A stretch of 64,000 nucleotides of DNA, taken from positions 1,364,001-1,428,000 of the forward strand of contig OZ037769.1 in NCBI GenBank assembly GCA_964035545.1, read 5' to 3'. Shown piece after piece: positions 44,660 through 57,323 of this stretch. Each line of letters opens with the position of its first letter. Position 1 is the first letter of the stretch. This DNA comes from Bugula neritina (taxonomy: Eukaryota; Animalia; Bryozoa). The notes below the pieces were generated by a model. That model saw only the letters and a program-made list of their open reading frames with translations. It did not search any database and was not told the DNA's origin. The position numbers were made by a program, and so were the translations under genes.

Positions 44660-46771
44660 CTTGATCTCGTATTTTGATTTTCAAAGCTAAGGCCAACTCA
44701 ATAAACGTCATGAACTCATAACTTTACCTGAATCCGAAGATAAATTTAATGTAAACGCTAACACGGTGACAGTGTAATTTCAAAACTAATTTACTAAACT
44801 AAAACTTAAAAGTTTGAACATAATGATGATAAATTTCAAAACTACAAAAGTAAAATAGTAAACAGTAAAACACTGAAACAGGTACTGATACTGATAGGTT
44901 TTAAAATATAATAATTCTAATAGTAATAGTAATACTAATACTAATAGTAATTCACTAATAGTTTAGTCAGTATTAGTAATAGTTAATGTAATACTAATAC
45001 TATTAGTAATAGTCATAGTAATGCCTATATTAATACTAATAGTAATACTAAGCCCAACCGTAGCGCCTAACGGTAACGGGTAATCACTGAAAATCATAAT
45101 CATAATGATAACAAACATGAAACTAAATAGAAGTAATACTAAGTCTAATAGTAATACTAATAGATAATCATAATGATAATCTTGTTCTTCGATTAAACTG
45201 AAACTCACATGTACAGAGGTATTTATTAACTATGACAAGTAAAGGCTTTACTTATAGTGACTTTCCTTGCTTATAATATTAATAACCTGAGCGCCAGTAT
45301 CACTGTGACTGCGATTGTAAGAGTAAGTGTAACTGTAAATTGCAATTGTTATTGTTACAGTACGTTAGCAAAGCTATTCAGAGTGCATCTACTATATTTG
45401 AAGATTTTCTCTTTTAACACTTTTTCTACCTCTCCATAAAGAGAACACAAGGTACACCCTTTTCTGCGTGACTATTGGATATTTATAAAAATACAGACAT
45501 TTAATTGGATACAGACGGTAAAGCAGCATTTGGACGTTTTCGTTGCTTAGGTACTGGTAGTTCCAAGAGGCTGCAGGGGGAGCACCCTTAGTATCTTAAT
45601 ATTAGTCGTGTTCAAATAATTCAGCTATGCATGCTTCGCAACACCTTAGTCTTTCATAATCATTTTCTCTCATGAGTCAGTCAATAATATAGTGTTTATA
45701 TAATTATAACCAACAATTTGAAGCAAATATCCAAGATACAAATCAAGTTTTGTGTCTTGTTTTTTAGCATTCAAGGGTTAAATTTTTCTATGCTGGTGCT
45801 CCATTTATGATTTATCATTTTAATAAAGCCGGTTTTGTTCAAAAATATTCACTCAACTTTAAGCTTTTTCATTTTCATTTTGTTCGCTGTTAGTGTTAGT
45901 GTTACACTTTCACTTTGACTTACTGTTACTGTGTTTGCTATTAGTATTAACACTGTTAGTTTTACGGATCGTCTTTAAAACAAAGACTAGCAGTAACTCC
46001 AAGTTTATTTTATGCTTTTACAACTACTACTACAGTACTAGTAGTAGTACTAGTAGACAGTGGTGGTAGCACTAGTATTGCATTTACTATTACTATTAGT
46101 ATTAGTATTACTAGAATTACTATTACTATTAGTATTACTATTACTATTAGTAATAGTATTAATTTTTTTATTAGTATTTTTATTGCAGTCAATGTTACTT
46201 ATACAGTTTTCAGTTTTACTTATGAAATTCATAGCCATATTGTTAAGTACTGAATTTAATATTCAATTTTTATTTTATAGAAATATTTGCATTGCTTAAA
46301 AATTTAAATATTTTTATTAGTAGTACTGTCAATGTTTATCGTTTATCAGTTTATGTTAGTTCTTTTTTTACCTGTTAGGCTGTTAGTGTTAATTTTACTA
46401 CTACTCAGTTGTTATACTCTAATTTTCAGTATGATTATGATTTATGCAATTAATATTGCAATCATTATGATTTTGATTTAAGCTTAACTCTTGATAGTAA
46501 TGATTGTTCACAGCCATTGCAAATGTCTTCATTCAGGCCAAATCATTTTTTTATTCAGCCAAATGTAATTGCTCATGCTAGAAGTGCTTATACTTACCTA
46601 TAATCTTTTTACTTGGAGGCATTAACTCCAGCCTCTGGTATCTAAGCTATAACATTAACTGTGTGTTTGTATTTATACATTTTAAATGAGCTCCTGCTAT
46701 ATTCCAAAGTGTGTACCAACTTATTATTTCACATTTTAATTACTTTGCTATTTTTGTAGCTAAATTTCATC

Positions 46772-48942
46772 ATGACAGCACCTATTGGAGAACTAGCACT
46801 TACCAAACCCGCCCCCAGTTTTTCTGGAACCGCAGTAGTGGATGCTGATTTCAAGACAGTAAAACTTAGTGACTACAAAGGGAAATATGTTGTCTTCTTT
46901 TTCTACCCTCTAGATTTGTAAGTTGATGTTGAAAAAAAGAATTGGACTTGATATAAAATGTTTTGTATTGCAAGTATTTGAATTTTATATATAAAACCAA
47001 TTCAGCATCTACATCTATACCACCCTATTGCTCATTTGAATAAATTTTATAAATAATATTTATCTGTTTGTATTTTCTTTTGTAGTACATTTGTATGCCC
47101 TACAGAGATTATAGCTTTCAGTGATAGAGCTGAAGAATTTCGAGCTATCAATTGTGAGGTAAGCACCAATCAGTGTGAGGTTATTTGAACTATGGTGTCA
47201 TAATATTTGTAGCTGGTTTTAACAGTAGAATACTAAGCTTCTAGTGTTTATTGATTCTCAACGCATATGTTCATAATGGTTTCATTAGCACTGCTCCAAT
47301 GTGGCTATGAGCATGCTAATGCACCTATCCTACAAATTATTTTACAATTTACACAACGCGATATACTAGATATATGTAGATACACATGTAGAAGCTGTAG
47401 GCATATTGATTTCAAAAGCATAATATAATTCAAATTGGTAGCCCAGCTAGAGTTACACAACTTTGTCCTGTGAGCTGTATCAATTAACTCTCTTAAGTAT
47501 CAGGTGATTTAGGGAATATAGCTTATTATAAACACAGCTTTGACACTTTGCATGCATGAATTAGGTAACAGAAATCGATACAGATTACAAGCTAAACATA
47601 AGTAATGGGAAGAAATTCCAGCAAATTTAAAAAGTGCATTTCTAAAGTCAAGTAGTCATATTACAAACAGGCTGTATGACTGGAGTTTTCAAATGATTAT
47701 TAAAACCTGTCCAGTGTCCACATTGGGACATGCATTCATTTTTTAGAAAATTCAAAAACACCCAAATGGTCCAGCTTTTTCTGATCATGCAGCTGATAAG
47801 CAAGTTTTTTTCCAAATACAAATTTAACAATTGCTGACCAAGTAGCAGTGCTTTTCAGTGACACCAAAGCCTTTGAAAGTTCACTCAGTAAAAATAACCA
47901 TGAATAGATTAAATATTAGTTCTTAGTAGATACAGAACTCATAATATTATGCTTCTTAATTCCATTTATGCCTCAGGATTATTTTAAGAGCAGCTAGGGA
48001 ATTTATTCGGCTAAAACTTGTGTCTCTGCTCAGGTTATAGCATGCTCTACCGACTCTGAGTTCAGTCACCTGGCATGGATCAACACTCCACGCAAGCAAG
48101 GGGGTCTTGGAAACATGAACATTCCACTGCTTGCTGACAAAACTTGCGAGATAGCCAAGAAATATGGTGTATATAAGGAAGATGAAGGTATGGCAACATT
48201 ATCATAGCCCACACAAATTTCATTTAGGGCTCCCAAGTGCTCTAAGCTATGGATTTAGCTAACAACCAATAGTTGAGACTCGCATTGCTCTGTTGCCGAG
48301 TATAGTTGGATTTTTTTGTTTTGGGCTAAAAATCATCACCATGTTATCATTCTAACTTCAAATTGCAACTTTTCGCATGCATTATTCGAAACATCAACAA
48401 TAGAATAATCAATTTAAGCTCAAAATTGTAAAATTTAGTGAGCAATAAGAAGCAGTTACAATCAACTAGCTAGTGTTCGGCATATGTAGAATCAACTTAT
48501 GTAATTGATGTTTAAGATTTCGCTTACAGCTTGGAAATTCAACCATTTTATTGATAATGCTAGTCTCAAACTCAGTCTTACTTTTTATTCAGCACTACTA
48601 ATATATTAGCTGGGATTTTTTTGTAACCATGCAGTAGTATATCTTCACTCTAAAATGTATATTTTTCTACTGGCCAACCTTTCGCATTCCAGCTGTTATA
48701 GGCCTGTTTATTTTGCAGGTGTTGCATTCAGAGGTCTCTTCATAATAGATGGCAAGGGCAACCTCAGGCAGATGACTATCAATGATTTACCAGTGGGCCG
48801 ATCAGTAGATGAAACTCTGCGATTGGTGCAAGCATTTCAGTTTACTGACAAGCACGGTGAGGTGTGCCCGGCTGGATGGAGACCTGGTAAAGAAACTATT
48901 AAACCTGATCCCAAAGGCAGCAAATCTTTCTTCCAAAAGTAA
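46772..48942 (+). CDS. PRDX: Typical 2-Cys peroxiredoxin (Prx1/2-like, no targeting peptide)
   Basis: Exons 46772-46917, 47086-47158, 48034-48187 and 48719-48942. Motifs FYPLDFTFVCPTE (peroxidatic Cys), [23 protein letters not shown] (resolving Cys). Confidence 0.97.
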
Positions 48943-50506
48943 ATGGTCTATCCACCAACTGTGCCTGTTGTAGTTACTACGCAGCTTTAGTGTAATTGAT
49001 TGCTAAAGAGATAGTCTCAAATTAATTATTGTTATTCTGATAAACTAGGACATTTTTCTTTTTTAGACAATTTACTGAATCCAGTTTTTTTTATACAAAT
49101 TTTACACTTCCTGTTTGCTGTACTGAGATGTTGCCTATTGGTGCATGAATAGTTTTACAGAGGTTGTTTAATTAATATCATTTCCCTAACTGAAAGGGCA
49201 GGTTTTTTGAGGAAAGGTTATTGGGTGAGCTATGAATATTAAGTCGAGTTTTCTGTAACCCCAAGCTATCCTCAGTCAGTCAACAGTTTTAATTTTGATG
49301 ACTCAAGTGTAGTATAACTCAAATTAATTTTCTTGGAAGATAATTTCAAGTTCCTTTATAAAAAGAATGTTTTATTAAATAGCAACTCTATAACTGTTGG
49401 CTACATTTGCTATAGTTGAGCTACAGGTAGATGCAAAAAGTCAATTTGCTTTGGATGAATTTATTGTTTATAATAGGAATATTATTCTATGCTCGGTTAT
49501 TAGGAAATATTTCTGTTTCCAGCGTAGATCTGAGAGAGTAATCTCAACAATGTCATGCTCACTGCTTTTGTTATTTTCATATTGTATTGCTTTATTAGCC
49601 AATTGTGATAGACTGCTGTGATGTACCTTTATATTACTAATATTGTGGTAAATATAACTGTTATGCATAAATAGAGGCATGTTATATTGGTATTATTATT
49701 GTTGTGATATTAAGAGCCCTGTGTTATTATTGAACAATATAGAACTTATATACAGTATACTATGATTTATGATGCTTACAATTATAGATTTACAGTGTAA
49801 ATCATTGCAAATTATAACCTCCAAGTTGAGATACTGGGACAATATTATATTGAATGATCGTTGTAAAACCTTACATAGAATTCAACTGCACATAATGTTT
49901 TACAATGTTAGAATGTTTTACCAAAATAAAATATCTCGTATGGAAGTAATATTGTTATGGAATATACAATAAAGTTACAATTTGTTAACTGTATCAATAT
50001 ATGGTCAATAATAGCACATTTATATGGGTAAAATCATAAACTATAAAAATAAGTTGGCTGTTGGTAGTATTCCATTACAATAGACTATAGAGAATGATGG
50101 AGTAAAAGCTGGTAAAATGGCAGTACAATCCGATACATGATATTTCTGTATTCCCTTCAGTGTTACCAAGATAATCTGACCGTTGCATTTAGATAGAGAA
50201 AGTATTTAATAATTAGGTTTATAGTTTTTAATCTCAAAGAAGCCCAAATAATGCAAACCAAAATTAAGTTGCCAAAATGAATTTAAACATGATGAAAATA
50301 ATTGACACTAAAAGGTTACCTGCTAGCACTTTGCTGTTCCCATAACAGAAGGAGCATACACCTGCTTGGCCAGCATACTCCAAATGAAACCAGACAACAT
50401 GAACTGACAGAACAATAGAAAATGGGAACAGGTTCATGTGTTGCCTAAATTATATCTTGCTGTGAAATTAACCCTCAATAAAAGGCTGGTGAAATTTCAA
50501 GAAGTC

Positions 50507-51357
50507 TGTCACCACTATAAACAGTGGGGGAACAATTCTCAACAGTTTTCAACTGTGACATGATTCGTGACGGTCTCCACTATTACAGTGGGAGAATAAT
50601 TCCCAACAGCATAAGCTGTGACGAGACGGGTCTAGATAACTTTAGTAAACAAATTATAAACGAGTTAGCATAGCTACTTGATAAATATATTTGCTTATTA
50701 ACCAATATTGAGTGAGGACAACATAGCCATGTTTTCATTCATCACAGCTGGAGAAAATTTAGCTTTCAACGGGCATAAATTCTCATCAGCAATCGAAACT
50801 TAGCTTCTAGTTGATCCAATTGAAAGTTATTCATTTGTGTAAAACCAATTGTGACAGAGCAACAACAGTCGCCACTAGCAGAGTGGGGGAACAAATCCCA
50901 ACAGTGTAAAACTGTGACTTTATTTTAGAACAATATTCAACATATAATACTAGACTTGCCTTGATTGTGTCACAGATTTTACTCCATCAATTGATCGGGT
51001 CACATTATATGTTAGTCCACAGATAACGTTCACTCAACTTATTAATTTACAAATAAGCACTTGCTGGCAAACCAGTGAGTAAATTTCAACATTTTGAAGG
51101 AGTAAAACATGTGATGTCTACTAAAACGAGTGTTTCAACACATGAGTGGTAGAGCAGTACCAACCTTAGACATAGAGAATATATAAGATAGGCTGCAGTG
51201 TGCTTTATTCAACAGTAAATGTACATACATAAAATGAACATAAAAAGTCAAGTTACAGAATATTACACTGTAGATATGGAAATAAGAGTAAGTCGCCAAC
51301 CCAGATAGTCCGGTTGGGGGCGTTCAGGACGTCCCAACAGCTGTTAATAGCTGTGAC
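50507..51357. ncRNA. Cluster of four copies of a putative structured four-way-junction RNA element (family unknown)
   Basis: Copies at 50507-50560, 50573-50622, 50867-50919 and 51292-51357 share junction residues, while stems covary and loops differ. Confidence 0.55.
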
Positions 51358-51555
51358 ACGCACTTGCCTGTCTCTCAGTTAGTTATATTCTCCAACGTCT
51401 CTCAATATATACAAACGCCTACCTTCAACTTAGACACACGGCGAACAGTTAGGAAGTTGTGTACTCAGGTTTGTGTTGAATAAATTTACGACCTACCCAC
51501 TGCATAGAAACAGTCTCACACATGGTGACAGCTATATGGTACAAGCTACGAGGCT

Positions 51556-54485
51556 TTAATAGCGGATCATACCAGAAGAGTAGTGAATGTTCGGGTCTCC
51601 AGAAGGACCACCCGTATATTTAGGTAGCTTAGCTCGTTTCTCCTCCTACAAAGTATTGAAAACATACTAAATAAGAAGAGAGAAGAGTGAAATTGAAATG
51701 ACTTTGTATTGGAGTAAATCTCAAGTTTTCTAACAATTCGAAAAAAAAGGTTCCAATGATGTCAATACATATTCAAAGCTGATTTGGTTCCAGCATAAAG
51801 TAACGAGCCAAAGCATTTGAAAAATGTAATAAATTTCATGAGAGCAAAGTACACACGTGACACACTGACTCTACCTGTCACACTCAGTGACCCAGACACA
51901 TGACACACTGACTACTTGTCACACCCACTGACACACACATGGCACACTGATTCCTTCTGTCACACTCAGTGACTCAGAGGTGACATATGCTCTCACTTAA
52001 CAGCAAAATGAAAGTAAGAAAGGCTTATCTTGTACAGAAAGCTCCTTTCCTTTCTCAGTGTAGTCAGTGGTAAGAATCTACAAGAACACAAGAGACAGCA
52101 AACTACTTCCAGGAGAATCAGGGAGGGCATACTTACCAGAGAGATGTCTTCATCAGGATGAACAATAATCTGACCTGACCCTGTGGAGTCAACTTTCTTG
52201 ATGCCAGAAGGTAGGCTGCTCTTACCACCGTCCCCGCCCGAAGAAGAGGCTGTAACTTGAGGAGATGCAGGCAGTGGGATGCCAGGAGGTGGGAAAGCGG
52301 CCGGTGTCGGCATGGACTGGCCGGCTTCAGCTTGAGCCGATAAGGAGGGCTGCGGTGGCGCCTGGAGGAACAACGGCAGTCAGTATTATTTCTAACTTCT
52401 ATATTCATTTTAATTAATTTTAATTTTACTGTTACTGAGCGAGAGTTGACAGGTGACATAGTAAACTTGTACCTGGGATGTAGCGGCAGGAAAGAGTGGT
52501 GGTCGTGTCGGGCCGATACTCGGTGGCGGCTGAGGTCCAGAGTTTGGGGGAGGGGCTCCTGGGGGTCTCCACATTCCAGGAGGCGGGCCTCCCATTCTAG
52601 CACCACCCATATTAGGTGGAGGACCGCCCATTCCCATGCCTGATGTTTGTGAGATGCAAAATGAGATTAGCCAATTAAATAAAACGTATCGACCTTCACC
52701 TAGAACCACAAACTTGTCCCATCTTATTAAGGGCAAGTGATATAAAAATGAGAAACAGATGGCAAAGTGACTGCCCCAGGCCAGGAAAACAAACCAGGAT
52801 AAATTTCAAGTTCTTCAAAATAATATCAGCGGCTCTTACCAGGTGGAGGGCCTCCCATTCCGGGGGGAATCGGCATTCGTGGGGGACCAGGCATCCCCGG
52901 GGGACCATTGAACATCATTTGAGGGGGTCGCATTCCCATTGGTCCACCTATGGGTTGAAGCACAAATGCATTTAGTACACTAATGAGGGGGCACGCAATT
53001 TTTAATAGTCACTAACAAAACAAACTATATTTAGTATAATTTAAATGTTAGTAACTTAACAGCACCAAAAACCAATCACTCACCCATATTTGGCCCACCA
53101 AAATTGGGACCTCCAAAGTGAGGCCCACCAAAGCCACCCATATTAGGGCCACCAAAGCCTGATGGACCCATATTAGGTGGCCCAAAGCCTGGCATTGGAG
53201 GTCGCATTCCCATCTGGTTGAATTGTGGAGTCGGAGGAGCTGATTGGTTATTAGAAGCAGAATTGCTTGACTCGCCCACTGTAACATCCAAGATACGATT
53301 ACCAATCGGCAATAGGCTACTTATTGACTAGTGTGTCTAAGAAAAATAGTTTTGGAATCATATCTTACACTTTCTAAATTTTAGATGAGGCGTACAATGG
53401 CTGGAAAACTAAAGTAACAAAATAACTAAGGACGGTGTTAACTTGTGCGAGTAATAAAACTTTGACAATTTTGCAAAATAACCTGATGACTGTTGACTGG
53501 AAGTTTTCTTCTCGTGGGCTATGACATCTTCTTCGGGAATTCCTTCCATCCCGTAGATCTCAATTTCTGTGCTGTCTCGCCCAGGTACGGCATTATGCAC
53601 CTTCTCTAATTTCTCTTTGTGTACCTACACCAGCAGTGAATCGGATAACACCCCTAACTACCTGGTTTAATATGTACACATGACAGTCAGTAAATATCAA
53701 TAAAAATAATACATATCACCATATTACTAGACACCACTCTTACTGTATTCAAGCACTATAAATAGTTGATGCAGTTGCGTACAGTAGTGGATAAGAACAG
53801 CATGAGATTACCGACCTGGGCACAGTGAATCTGTAAGCCGGGCCCGGTGTACAGTTTCTTGTGACAGATGTGACATTTGAAATGTTTTGCTTTCTGGTGC
53901 TGAATTAATATCTTTTCATCTTCAAACTCACGATTACAATACCTAGATTCTAAGGTCAAGGCTGAACAACTTGCAAGGTAAACAGTCACACATTTATTAA
54001 CAGTAGAAAAGAAATTGAGATAGCCTAAGTTCTTTAATTTATTTTATTAAACCTTGGTTTGGGGGCAGTTTGAAATTCTTGGTAGAACATAACTTATTTT
54101 GCTACACTTTCTAATCTAGAATACAGGCTTTTTTCAATTACTGCACCTAACTCGAAAATCATATAAATTTAAGAATTTCCAACTAATAAAACTTCCATTC
54201 TGTCCATATAAGTATAGCAGTCATAGATATACAATACAACTGCTAGAATCAATTTTAATGCAGCATCTTAATTACTGAATTGCAAATTGCAAATTCTGAT
54301 TTTCTGTGACTATAAAACTTTGTACAGGTGAGTTTTTAGAATCATCATTAGTAGAACGAGAATCTAAGATAAATGAGTTTTACATTCAATGATAACAAAT
54401 TATTGCATTAACCGGTTGACAATACCAGCATTATAAAAGGATACCAGCACCATGGCTTAGACTGCTTTTTCTTCTTTCTACCCAT
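51556..54485 (-). CDS. ZNF207: BUB3-interacting GLEBS-motif zinc finger protein (BuGZ)
   Basis: [66 protein letters not shown]...[11 protein letters not shown], a Pro/Gly/Met-rich middle, PLFPAA, and the GLEBS motif [21 protein letters not shown]. Stop at 51556-51558. Confidence 0.97.
53943..54444 (-). other. U12-type GT-AG intron 1 of ZNF207
   Basis: 5' site GTATCCTTTT interrupting the Trp codon of KPWC-W-YC; branch-like CCTTGAC ~12 nt upstream of the AG. Confidence 0.92.
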
Positions 54486-57323
54486 ATCTACTTAAATTCA
54501 AAATGAGTTTAGGTTCTTCTTTCTTGTGATCAGGGTAGCTGCAATTACTCAATTTTATAAACTCTCACATTAAATAAGAATACTTAATTGGTGAATGTGC
54601 TAAATATTATAATTATGATTCTGAGTATGATTGTTCATTAAAATAGTTTGAATTAATATCATCAGAATGATAACCATCATGATGATGGTCTTGATTATCA
54701 ATTGATACTGGTAAACTCAAACTGATAATCATTATGATTATGATTATGATAAATATTATTGGTTATTAAATTTGAAATTCCTGTATATCGTTAATTTTAG
54801 TTTTAATAATTTTAATTCATTTTAGGCCTAATAATAATTTCAAATTTAAAGTTTTAACTATTATTACTATTTAGTGTTTTATGTTGATATGTGATGTATA
54901 ACTATAAGCCGCCTTCAGTTGTCCTGTTATTCTAAAAAAAATTAGCCTAGGTTAGCGCCAGCTTTCAAAAACACCTTCTCATTATGAGCTAAAAATTAAA
55001 TTACCTAGTATCTACAAACTACGACTAAAAATGGCAGCTTCGACAATTCATCGGTTTCAATTACAAAGTTATTCTCTTTTTTGCCAAGATTAAAAAGACA
55101 ACCCTTTTGAGATTAATAACGCGCCAACATTTAAGGAGTTGTCTTTGATTTTCAACTAGTAGCTTGTATCGGAAATCGTTAGTAGACCTACGATCTCCAG
55201 GAGGGAAAGCGGCGTGCCACTGAAGCAAAGCGAAACAATCGAATAGAAGGATAACAATCATTCAATTGCAAGAAGTAGCGACGAAAGGATTAACAATCAA
55301 AGCAAAACTGAGGACAGTAGTAACGATAACATTCCACTGAGGTAAAAGCTTAAATTTTTATGTTGTATTCGTATTTTGACCTAACGTGAATAGTAGCACA
55401 CGTATTGATGTTCATAACCAGGTACTTAGAGTTACTATAAGTATTATCTAGCTCTCTGTTCAGGTTCTACACTAAAACTTTTAGTAAATCTTAATGATAT
55501 TCTAATCTTTATCTACTACTACTTCTAGTACTTCTACTTCTAGTCACAGAAGCAAATTGAAATTTGAAAGAGATAAGTTAAACCCACTAACTGACTAAGT
55601 CTCAAAGTCAGTCAGTATCGCGTGTTAATTTAGTATTACTATTACTATTACTATTAGTATTACTATTAGTAATACTATTACTATAACCATGTCTATTGGT
55701 ATTAGTAATTACTATTAGTATTACTATTAGTGATAGTGATAGCATTGCTATCGGTATGGCGATGAGTTGCTGCAAGTGTAATCACTATGACTATCACTAT
55801 CAGAGTACCCCTATCAGTATCAGCCAAGTCTGAGTAGTGAATCTCAATCTGGTGTCTGAGTGATAATAACAACTGATATAAACTTAAAGTTAACGCCAAG
55901 CGTGAAACATGTTTACGTTACTTTTAGTAATAAGTTACTACTAAAGCACTAATTAGTTGCTGTTAACATTGCGAAATTATTAGGCTTGATCATGGTGTTA
56001 AACTCAAATGACCATTGTTAAGCATTGTGATTGCCATTACATAATGATAACGCATTTACTAAGAGTCAGAGTGAGTCTAACTAATACTAATAGTAATGCT
56101 AATACAGTAAATGTAATAGCACTTTTAGCTGTTATTACTAATAATATTAGTACTACTACTACCGCGGTAGTTCATGTCAGTGTTAGTAAGAAAGTTGTAC
56201 TTCTTCTTCATATTGATCTTGAAAGTCAATTACCATAGTATCATAGCTGTAAACTATCAATTGTATTCTTTACACTGATTGCAAGATGAATATTACCATC
56301 AAGTTGACGCTGACTAATTTAGTATCAGTAATGGATTGTCATTATGATTGAGTTTACTTTGTAATCCCTAATTAAATTTCCTCTTTATTATTATTAAACA
56401 TATATTACTGTATTTAGTGTGTTGCATCTACTGCTAGTGCTTATACCTGGTACACAATCGTTATCATCATAGTAACCAATGTGTATAGTATACTAATTGC
56501 TATTAAATCATAATTTAGTATTGGATTTGAAAGCTTAAATTACTTATTAAAATAGTTTTAACTTGATTGAAAATTGCTATGGAGTTCTTCTAAATAATAG
56601 ATAGCTACTCAAGGTCTTTCATTTTAATTGTAGCTAGTTATTGGATTTTAGATGGAAGTTAGCAGTTAATACTGGACAGGTCGGCTCTATTCGAAAGTAT
56701 AATAGCCAGATTAATTTTAGTGCTTAAATTGAATGTGAGGATTAGCTGCACTGTTACAGTCAATAACAATAAAAACGGCACATTTATACCTAATGTGTTT
56801 TCATTTTTCCAGGCATACTGTTTCTAATTAAGTAGTTGAATAGAACTTGTCAATGTTACATGTTTACACATTTATTGATAATGTATATCTCAGTAGGCTT
56901 TGGAATTTGCAGTGTGCTCTGTCTTTAACATACAACAATAATTAATATTATAGCATTTTCAAAGTCGCAAAAAATAATTTAGTTCATAACACACATGTAT
57001 AATTGTATACACATTCTATGTATAAGCATATATTTTATACGTCTTGCACATGTCGCTACTTATGTGAAGAATTAACACATTTTAGCTTTTAGGCATTTGG
57101 GAAAAGTTGTTGTTACATGCAAATCTAACACCATATCTAAGCAGTGCTACTACAACTTTGTGTTACTGCTACAACTTTCTAGTTTGTGGTTATCAAAGAT
57201 TAGATTAAAGCTTCAGTTGATATTTTGATTGTTGCTCTCACCCTGCAACTAGTGTAAAGGATATTTTAATTAATATCAGGATGTTCCCTCTACTTTTCTC
57301 ACAAGTAATGTTTGTTTTCCAGC

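Follow-up and report, generated by a model that had tools for sequence, protein, structure and literature searches.

The stretch of DNA considered here, called the window throughout, is a 64,000-nucleotide (nt) segment of the genome of the bryozoan Bugula neritina (GenBank assembly GCA_964035545.1, contig OZ037769.1, positions 1,364,001 to 1,428,000 of the forward strand), and the subject is a cluster of four short folded elements that lies between the converging 3' ends of a peroxiredoxin gene (Prx, stop codon at 48940-48942) and the gene for the zinc-finger protein ZNF207 (BuGZ). The ZNF207 assignment is based on an N-terminal pair of C2H2 fingers, a C-terminal motif and the assignment already made by the initial annotation of the window. 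The finger pair matches PDB 6j0d (E = 4e-19), which we take to be the plant BuGZ homologue SUF4, and the C-terminal motif is presumably the Bub3-binding region. The initial annotation had placed four related copies of the element in this interval, and all were found there by R1, a covariance model built from the four window copies, at about 75, 70, 66 and 47 bits. The gene end and the copies are arranged as follows, the minus strand of the window being the sense strand of ZNF207.

52136-52365, minus strand: penultimate ZNF207 exon, 100% identical to a Bugula neritina protein
51645-52135, minus strand: last ZNF207 intron; spliced joint 51644/52136 present in RNA contigs
51556-51644, minus strand: last coding exon of ZNF207/BuGZ, from translation; stop codon at 51556-51558
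51292-51357, minus strand: copy 4 of the element; 46.7 bits with R1; 198 nt 3' of the ZNF207 stop
50868-50918, minus strand: copy 3; 70.5 bits with R1; fold z-score -3.5
50573-50622, minus strand: copy 2; 65.7 bits with R1
50508-50559, minus strand: copy 1; 75.3 bits with R1; in tandem with copy 2, 65 nt apart

Orthologous loci were sought with the exon peptide and not with the element, the exons being searched separately. They comprise a published assembly representing a second B. neritina lineage (GCA_010799875.2, here L058), a Logan contig whose ZNF207 exon is 55% identical (L057), a European Nucleotide Archive metagenome contig at 61% (L062) and a group of three loci at 65% (L056, L063 and L064). 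A second covariance model, R2, was trained on the elements of L057 and L062.

Read on the plus strand of the window, the consensus of the element is GUC-N-[CCA..UGG][GGG(A)..(U)CCC]-A-[RCAG..CUGY]GAC. It describes a compact four-way junction in which a closing helix of 3 bp (P1, GUC/GAC) is stacked directly on one hairpin (P4, RCAG..CUGY) while two further hairpins (P2, CCA..UGG, and P3, GGG(A)..(U)CCC) are stacked directly on each other, leaving two unpaired nucleotides at the junction, one invariant A and one variable. This fold is the minimum-free-energy structure of copies 1, 3 and 4 on the plus strand, of copies 2, 3 and 4 on the minus strand, and of the elements of L057 and L062. Across six sequences the three junction-proximal pairs of each helix do not vary, the exception being the second pair of P3 in copies 1 and 2: in copy 1 this is G.U on the plus strand and C.A on the minus strand, and in copy 2 an A.C mismatch on the plus strand and G.U on the minus strand. 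Copy 4, whose plus-strand letters are GTC-G-[CCAACC..GGTTGG][GGGCGT..ACG(T)CCC]-A-[ACAGCT..AGCTGT]GAC, requires a bulged T or a G.U pair in P3. Beyond these cores the helices vary in a paired manner, with P2 reading CCACU/AGUGG, CCAAC/GUUGG or CCAACCA/UGGUUGG and the fourth P4 pair either U:A or C:G; in L057 P4 is longer by more than 20 nt. The initial annotation had described a junction in which an AA linker and a TGAC were both invariant. One unpaired A is indeed invariant, whereas the second A pairs with the T preceding GAC, as A:U in all B. neritina copies and as G:C in L057 and L062. P4 therefore begins one pair earlier than had been drawn, with a single unpaired A, and the second A and the T both vary.

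Several lines of evidence show that it is the fold that is maintained. The distal pairs beyond the conserved cores number 35, whereas shuffling the same inner segments gives 10.5±3.5, and 0/20000 shuffles reached 35; this count comes from a manual parse in which copies 1-3 cannot be treated as independent. RNAalifold applied to a MAFFT alignment recovered P3 and P4 only, because insertions misalign the other stems, and the manual parse was used instead. When the sequences were aligned by fitting to the model, 92.7% of cells paired, as against 39-52% with the partners slid, and double changes were seen at four pairs, the compensatory changes running from A:U to G:C and from C:G to U:A. About four independent lineages contribute to this covariation. 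The comparison of the window with L058 is consistent with it: the elements are identical at 212/219 positions (96.8%) and the rest of the untranslated region (UTR) at 1270/1498 (84.8%; P = 5e-8), and all five substitutions within elements fall in loops or at the unpaired N, so that 0/150 paired positions have changed (P = 0.003). Copy 2 is identical at 50/50 positions between the two B. neritina lineages (P = 3e-4 at the background divergence) and copy 3 at 50/51, its single change being in a loop; copy 1 is the only copy with a lesion in a stem, a 2-nt deletion in P3 of L058. The elements are selected as folded nucleic acid and have the properties of a conserved structured RNA, as the initial annotation had proposed, and the conservation of paired sites together with the compensatory pattern excludes a neutral minisatellite.

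The element is also specific to this locus. A partial pattern, CAACAG-N4-16-CTGTGAC, has exactly 4 matches in the window, which are the four copies, where 0.01 would be expected, and a longer pattern run across the 216 Mb genome found the four copies and one further site that is probably due to chance. Searches of the genome with the covariance models, in which 150 prefiltered candidates were scored, placed the best non-element site of window or genome at about 22-25 bits (R1 and R2); the next-best genomic sites (L040 at 21.5, L069 at 24.6 and L050 at 20.8 bits) are partial and chance-like. A loose pattern search returned chance and minisatellite matches only. None of the pattern matches in viruses (n=17) scored above 20 bits with the full model, nor did any of the 80 listed from at least 120 prokaryotic matches, and all are attributed to chance. 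Rfam 15 gave no match in the window at the gathering score and, at E <= 10 over 50300-51500, two chance-level matches that both lie outside the elements; hammerhead, twister, twister-sister, hatchet, pistol, HDV, U1, U11 and SECIS were among the families without a match on them, and ARAGORN found no transfer RNA (tRNA). The element is thus an undescribed structured RNA motif, locus-specific and outside the known Rfam families, in agreement with the initial annotation, which had recognised in it none of tRNA, hammerhead, HDV, twister or SECIS. A tRNA or tRNA-like gene was ruled out on its architecture as well, a 3-bp closing stem and variable loops of 3-10 nt standing against a 7-bp acceptor stem and a 7-nt anticodon loop. 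The terminus of a high-copy transposon or miniature inverted-repeat transposable element, which would have undone the first proposal, was ruled out because the copies are confined to a single locus in 216 Mb, by the pattern and by both models on the prefiltered candidates.

The L069 site is a half-element (G000:C2:27505249-27505297; L069 1501-1549, minus strand) that reads GGGAA..TTCTC-A-ACAGC-TATAA-GCTG and recalls P3 and P4 in the absence of P1 and P2. Its 24.6 bits correspond to a genome-level E of ~0.003, and it may be a chance match or a fragment.

Comparison of the orthologous loci ties the element to ZNF207. In L058 the convergent pair of ZNF207 and peroxiredoxin is present with all four copies between them. 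L057 has one element 264 nt past the ZNF207 stop (23.8 bits with R1, E = 2e-8, and 41.9 bits with R2) and L062 one element 262 nt past the stop (29.5 bits with R1 and 51.3 bits with R2), the R1 scores being the independent ones because of the training of R2; both elements have the same orientation to ZNF207 as those of the window. L056 and L063 carry a divergent copy ~1.2 kb past the stop, in which P2 is enlarged and the 3' half keeps CCCAACAG..GCTGTGAC. In L062 the downstream neighbour that converges with ZNF207, ~3 kb away, appears from its open reading frames to be sulfotransferase-like (L062 6418-11428) and no Prx is found within 5.4 kb, so that synteny downstream of ZNF207 is not conserved. 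Since the orthologues keep the position after the stop and the orientation, and Prx is absent near L062, the element belongs to the 3' end of ZNF207, and linkage to Prx was rejected. The ancestral state is one copy ~200-265 nt past the stop, at the position of copy 4, from which B. neritina expanded to four. The conservation in relatives, with compensatory changes, that the initial annotation would have needed is present, and searches with covariance models through Rfam, the genome and the relatives led to no known family, one genomic locus and orthologues after the ZNF207 stop.

The two B. neritina sequences differ by ~15% over the intergenic and untranslated region (window 48943-51552 against L058 1208-3718), and two segments have been replaced (about 50764-50847 and 51032-51137). 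The last ZNF207 exon shows one amino-acid change, LPKY to LPRY. This divergence fits cryptic sibling lineages within 'B. neritina'. NCBI places a gene model of 68 amino acids without a Pfam domain at L058 2338-3233, which lies inside the long ZNF207 3'UTR indicated by the RNA contigs and is probably spurious.

The region is transcribed. Logan contigs of four runs were used, the runs being either labelled as RNA or guessed to be so; the spliced ZNF207 joint 51644/52136 in these contigs speaks for RNA. Unitigs of 1532-1748 nt extend from the last-exon boundary at 51646 unbroken through all four copies to 49836-49908, and they diverge in the pattern of L058, sharing with it the two segments that align poorly. 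In one run (X5) a contig covering 50847-51646, and with it copies 3 and 4, has a depth of 425 as compared with 762 over the coding sequence; there is no coverage at 50124-50631, and contigs on the Prx side fade by about 50100. An abundant RNA with copies 3 and 4 is therefore continuous with ZNF207 and not with Prx, which is strong context for the sense strand although not proof of it. The initial annotation had placed copy 4 within the likely ZNF207 3'UTR, and contigs running out of the last exon bear this out; a long Prx 3'UTR or an independent plus-strand non-coding RNA, its other candidate hosts, agrees poorly with orthologues that are tied to ZNF207.

Around the copies lie short motifs that resemble splice donors and polyadenylation signals. 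Those of the window, in the order in which the ZNF207 message would meet them, are as follows.

51492-51497, minus strand: first GGTAGG donor-like motif, in the proximal 3'UTR
51418-51423, minus strand: second GGTAGG donor-like motif
51362-51368, minus strand: donor-like motif of the AGGCAAGU type (GGCAAGT), 4 nt 5' of copy 4
51268-51291, minus strand: branch-point- and acceptor-like CUUAC, pyrimidine tract and ACAG directly 3' of copy 4, by sequence reading; the C of CUUAC is the last base of P1 (51292)
51204-51209, minus strand: AATAAA poly(A) signal, about 85 nt 3' of copy 4
50954-50960, minus strand: second GGCAAGT, 35 nt 5' of copy 3, kept in L058 at 1772
50919-50924, minus strand: second AATAAA, abutting copy 3

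The 3'UTRs of the relatives cannot be aligned with that of the window and yet have these short motifs in common, always in the sense of ZNF207. The proximal UTR of 5/6 loci (window, L058, L057, L062 and L056) contains two GGTAGG motifs separated by 39-74 nt, L063 having one. GGCAAGT occurs twice in the 3'UTR of the window, twice in L058, three times in L057, four times in L062 and once each in L056 and L063; outside the 3'UTR it is absent from both strands of the five fetched loci, and the 64 kb window holds six further sites, about the chance rate. The Poisson probability of this clustering ranges from 1e-7 to 7e-4, being 1e-7 in L062 and 6e-6 in L057. The motif stands 0-35 nt 5' of a junction in every species but the L056 group, where the distance is ~120 nt, and at 0-29 nt in the window, L057 and L062. 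In context the motifs read AAG|GUAGG, AUG|GUAGGU and CAG|GCAAGU, which is the consensus of a 5' splice site, and AG|GCAAGU (AGGCAAGU) is the canonical donor consensus of GC-AG introns. Downstream of the junction L057 has CUAAC, a U-rich tract and AG, and L062 has CUUAC and UAG. An AATAAA follows the junction by 75-85 nt in the window, L058 and L062, that is in 3/5 of the 3'UTRs compared; the L062 signal, UUGAAUAAA, lies about 75 nt past the junction, and no AATAAA follows the junction in L057.

The same part of the window contains inverted repeats in which GGAGTAAAA and its complement recur (50095-50111, 50970-50990 and 51094-51114), with arms of 21 nt that are 86% complementary and of 17 nt that are 94% complementary. 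The pair 50970-50990/51094-51114 was excluded from the element because it is not maintained in the second lineage.

A possible meaning for this arrangement comes from work on the host gene. In human cells the zinc fingers of ZNF207 bind the U1 small nuclear RNA (snRNA) and U1-70K, and the protein acts as an auxiliary factor of the U1 small nuclear ribonucleoprotein (snRNP) (PMC12952242). The same study reports feedback of ZNF207 onto other U1-associated genes and modulation of weak 5' splice sites and poison exons (PMC12952242). It has also been reported that pairing of U1 within a terminal exon inhibits polyadenylation (PMC2367729). Because ZNF207 assists the U1 snRNP and U1 in a terminal exon can inhibit polyadenylation, we propose that the element may be a regulatory module of the ZNF207 3'UTR that works in the sense orientation and is coupled to the U1 snRNP. 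This is the reading that we favour, although we hold it tentatively and at somewhat less than even odds, and its mechanism is one that we infer. The U1 snRNP would pair with the donor-like motifs of the terminal exon, the two GGUAGG and then the AGGCAAGU copies, while the invariant core of the junction would serve as a platform for a protein, for which ZNF207 itself is a candidate. The output of ZNF207 messenger RNA (mRNA) would in this way be made dependent on ZNF207 or U1 activity and productive mRNA would be reduced. Two routes to such a reduction can be envisaged. Either 3'-end processing would be inhibited or the message retained in the nucleus, or a ~98-nt GC-AG mini-intron (51268-51365) with the junction as its core would be spliced unproductively, which would lead to nonsense-mediated decay. 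In its most specific form, which we consider rather doubtful, the 3'UTR would contain a sensor: next to donor decoys of the GC type the junction would bring in ZNF207, or some other protein associated with U1, and together they would gate polyadenylation or unproductive splicing.

The closest functional analogue of such a module would be the polyadenylation-inhibition element (PIE) of U1A. Both are structured elements in the 3'UTR of a gene associated with the U1 snRNP, shortly upstream of a poly(A) signal and near sequences that can engage U1; here the junction lies 198-264 nt past the stop, with AATAAA 75-85 nt downstream in the window, L058 and L062. The U1A PIE consists of a stem whose two internal loops reproduce the loop sequence of U1 stem-loop II (SLII) and bind U1A. 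The present element differs in being a four-way junction whose loops are not conserved and contain no U1 loop sequence, and binding of its own protein is only proposed. U1 snRNA itself (RF00003) also has four helices with almost no unpaired nucleotides at the junction, and the GGG..CCC and CAG..CUG of the element recall stem-loop I (SLI, GGGG..CCCC) and SLII (CAGG..CCUG) of B. neritina U1. In contrast to U1, the element has neither the loop motifs for U1-70K and U1A nor an Sm site, and the order of its helices matches on the antisense strand only. Mimicry of U1 snRNA was accordingly dropped as an explanation, the resemblance being confined to the bases of the stems and to the antisense reading, and is kept as an analogy at most. 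With intron bridging structures and GC-AG introns the element shares a GC-type donor upstream, branch-point- and acceptor-like signals downstream and ends that are joined by a closing helix; it differs in that no splicing was observed in the contigs of the four runs, and known structures that bridge donor and branch point are simple stems without a sequence-invariant junction. Self-cleaving ribozymes such as hammerhead, twister-sister and hairpin, and tRNA-like folds, are similar in size (50-80 nt), in having several helices at a junction and in their multiple copies. The element lacks the conserved unpaired catalytic nucleotides of the former, its core having one A and one variable nucleotide unpaired, and its loops are too small and variable for the latter. 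The suggestions of ligand sensing, metal sensing and self-cleavage made from the sequence at first found no support in the analysis.

Four U1 snRNA genes were located in the genome (G000:C4:6269584-6269747, C4:6537383-6537546, C2:21591835-21591998 and C9:8343719-8343882), at 155-156 bits. The 5' arm of B. neritina U1 is AUACUUACCUG, and the helices of its junction are GCAC/GUGC, GGGG..CCCC, CAGG..CCUG and CGAU..CUCG. In the gene for U1-C no tandem array and no junction was found within 3 kb around the zf-U1 exons.

A number of observations count against the proposed sense module. No spliced form of the mini-intron appears in the contigs of the four runs; these contigs are unstranded, and several of the runs are RNA by guess and not by label. 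No similarity between the junction and U1 snRNA was detected (Rfam, E <= 10), the resemblance of the junction to the bases of SLI and SLII holds on the antisense reading only, and the independent lineages found number only four. To these must be added the evidence from the folds. For most copies the fold is slightly better on the antisense strand, which is the plus strand of the window, P3 of copy 1 and P3 of L057 carry G.U pairs on that strand, and the 14-bp outer helix of L062 has three G.U pairs in the antisense reading and three mismatches in the sense reading (z -4.8 against -2.2). P3 of copy 2 and P3 of L056 favour the ZNF207 sense, and copy 2 is presumably functional, since all of its positions are conserved between the lineages; P3 of copy 1 is mismatched in the ZNF207 sense, and in L058 copy 1 alone has decayed. 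The initial annotation had noted that copy 2 favours the minus strand, which stands, and that G-U pairs otherwise favour the plus strand, a preference that is not clear overall, the evidence being mixed. On balance the functional strand is probably, though by no means securely, that of ZNF207; we give the antisense strand roughly one chance in four, and a still smaller chance goes to some other arrangement.

The alternative that fares best is that the functional RNA is read from the opposite, plus strand of the window, as a natural antisense or a read-through transcript. In that orientation a consensus donor (GUAAGU or GUUAGU) upstream and ACUUGCCUG downstream, which resembles the 5' arm of U1, flank the junction and can pair with each other. 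Free energy is lower on the plus strand in 5/7 copies, the strand-specific G.U pairs extend to the outer helix of copy 4 as well as P3 of copy 1 and of L057, and 0/200 shuffles matched the outer helix of L062 with its three G.U pairs and its z of -4.8. Loops are rich in A on the plus strand (37 A against 19 T, by hand count), and GGG(A)..(U)CCC followed by CAG..CUG is the order of the bases of U1 SLI and SLII. Set against this, the contigs, unstranded as they are, give no sign of plus-strand transcription, and on the Prx side of run X5 coverage ends before copy 1 and is nil at 50124-50631. The convergent neighbour also varies, being Prx in B. neritina and sulfotransferase-like in L062, and by sequence reading the copies have no promoter-like or polymerase III terminator features in common around them. 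Moreover copy 2 is perfectly conserved despite its A.C mismatch on the plus strand, and P3 of L056 pairs in the ZNF207 sense only. We therefore regard a plus-strand RNA as unlikely, if well short of negligible.

Less probable again, in our estimation, is a junction that has no partner of its own and simply forms the folded centre of a GC-AG intron, small and regulated, within the ZNF207 3'UTR. Under this explanation the order AG|GCAAGU, junction, CUUAC or CUAAC, pyrimidine tract and AG is that of an intron, the sole role of the fold is to bring donor and branch point together, and splicing more than 55 nt past the stop would make the mRNA a target of nonsense-mediated decay. It agrees with the AGGCAAGU donor consensus within 29 nt 5' of the junction in the window, L057 and L062, with branch-point-like, pyrimidine-rich and AG signals within 25-45 nt downstream, the order from donor to AG being seen in the window, L058, L057 and L062, and with a closing helix that brings both ends together. 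It is also favoured by the report that ZNF207 modulates weak 5' splice sites, together with poison exons in genes associated with U1 (PMC12952242). However, the contigs of the four runs read through with no 51365/51268 joint, although rare or decay-targeted forms would be missed; additional GGCAAGT sites have neither a junction nor a clear acceptor; no donor or acceptor signals flank copies 1 and 2; and a simple spacer does not need three near-invariant junction-proximal pairs in each helix.

A feature of the DNA itself is very improbable, whether a cluster of short palindromes that is protein-bound or extruded or what is left of a decaying minisatellite or mobile element. In its favour, the helix bases read alike on both strands, the G.U pairs give mixed evidence, copies 1 and 2 stand in tandem and the region is rich in minisatellites. 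Against it, the element is a single locus in 216 Mb with no viral or prokaryotic counterpart among the matches scored, three hairpins of 4-7 bp closed by 3 bp would not extrude from duplex DNA, neutral decay cannot yield compensatory stem changes or leave every paired site unsubstituted, and the position relative to the stop codon is kept where the flanks no longer align.

Returning to the sense module, its interest would lie in the gene in which it is found. The role of ZNF207/BuGZ as a cofactor of the U1 snRNP was established only in 2025, and if the link to U1 holds the element would offer a testable feedback circuit for U1 snRNP homeostasis, with a new junction fold whose sequence-specific core may be read by a zinc-finger protein. 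If the sensor is real, a new RNA fold would mediate feedback that keeps U1 snRNP activity in homeostasis. To our knowledge structured, covarying cis-elements are rare in animal 3'UTRs and are usually tied to the autoregulation of RNA-binding proteins. Even without a mechanism the element is a new RNA family, present as four paralogues in one species and as a single orthologue in each of two others, a set well suited to structure probing and to comparative work on bryozoans.

Two further features of the surroundings may be recorded. Within the last ZNF207 intron, 51851-51978 consists of three tandem units of ~43 nt (ACACACGTGACACACTGAC...), at which RNA and DNA contigs break or have loose ends. 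The gene pair is flanked by imperfect repeats of trinucleotide type (44960-46300 and 55600-56240), which generate long open reading frames that are spurious and abound in T, N, S, L, V and I.

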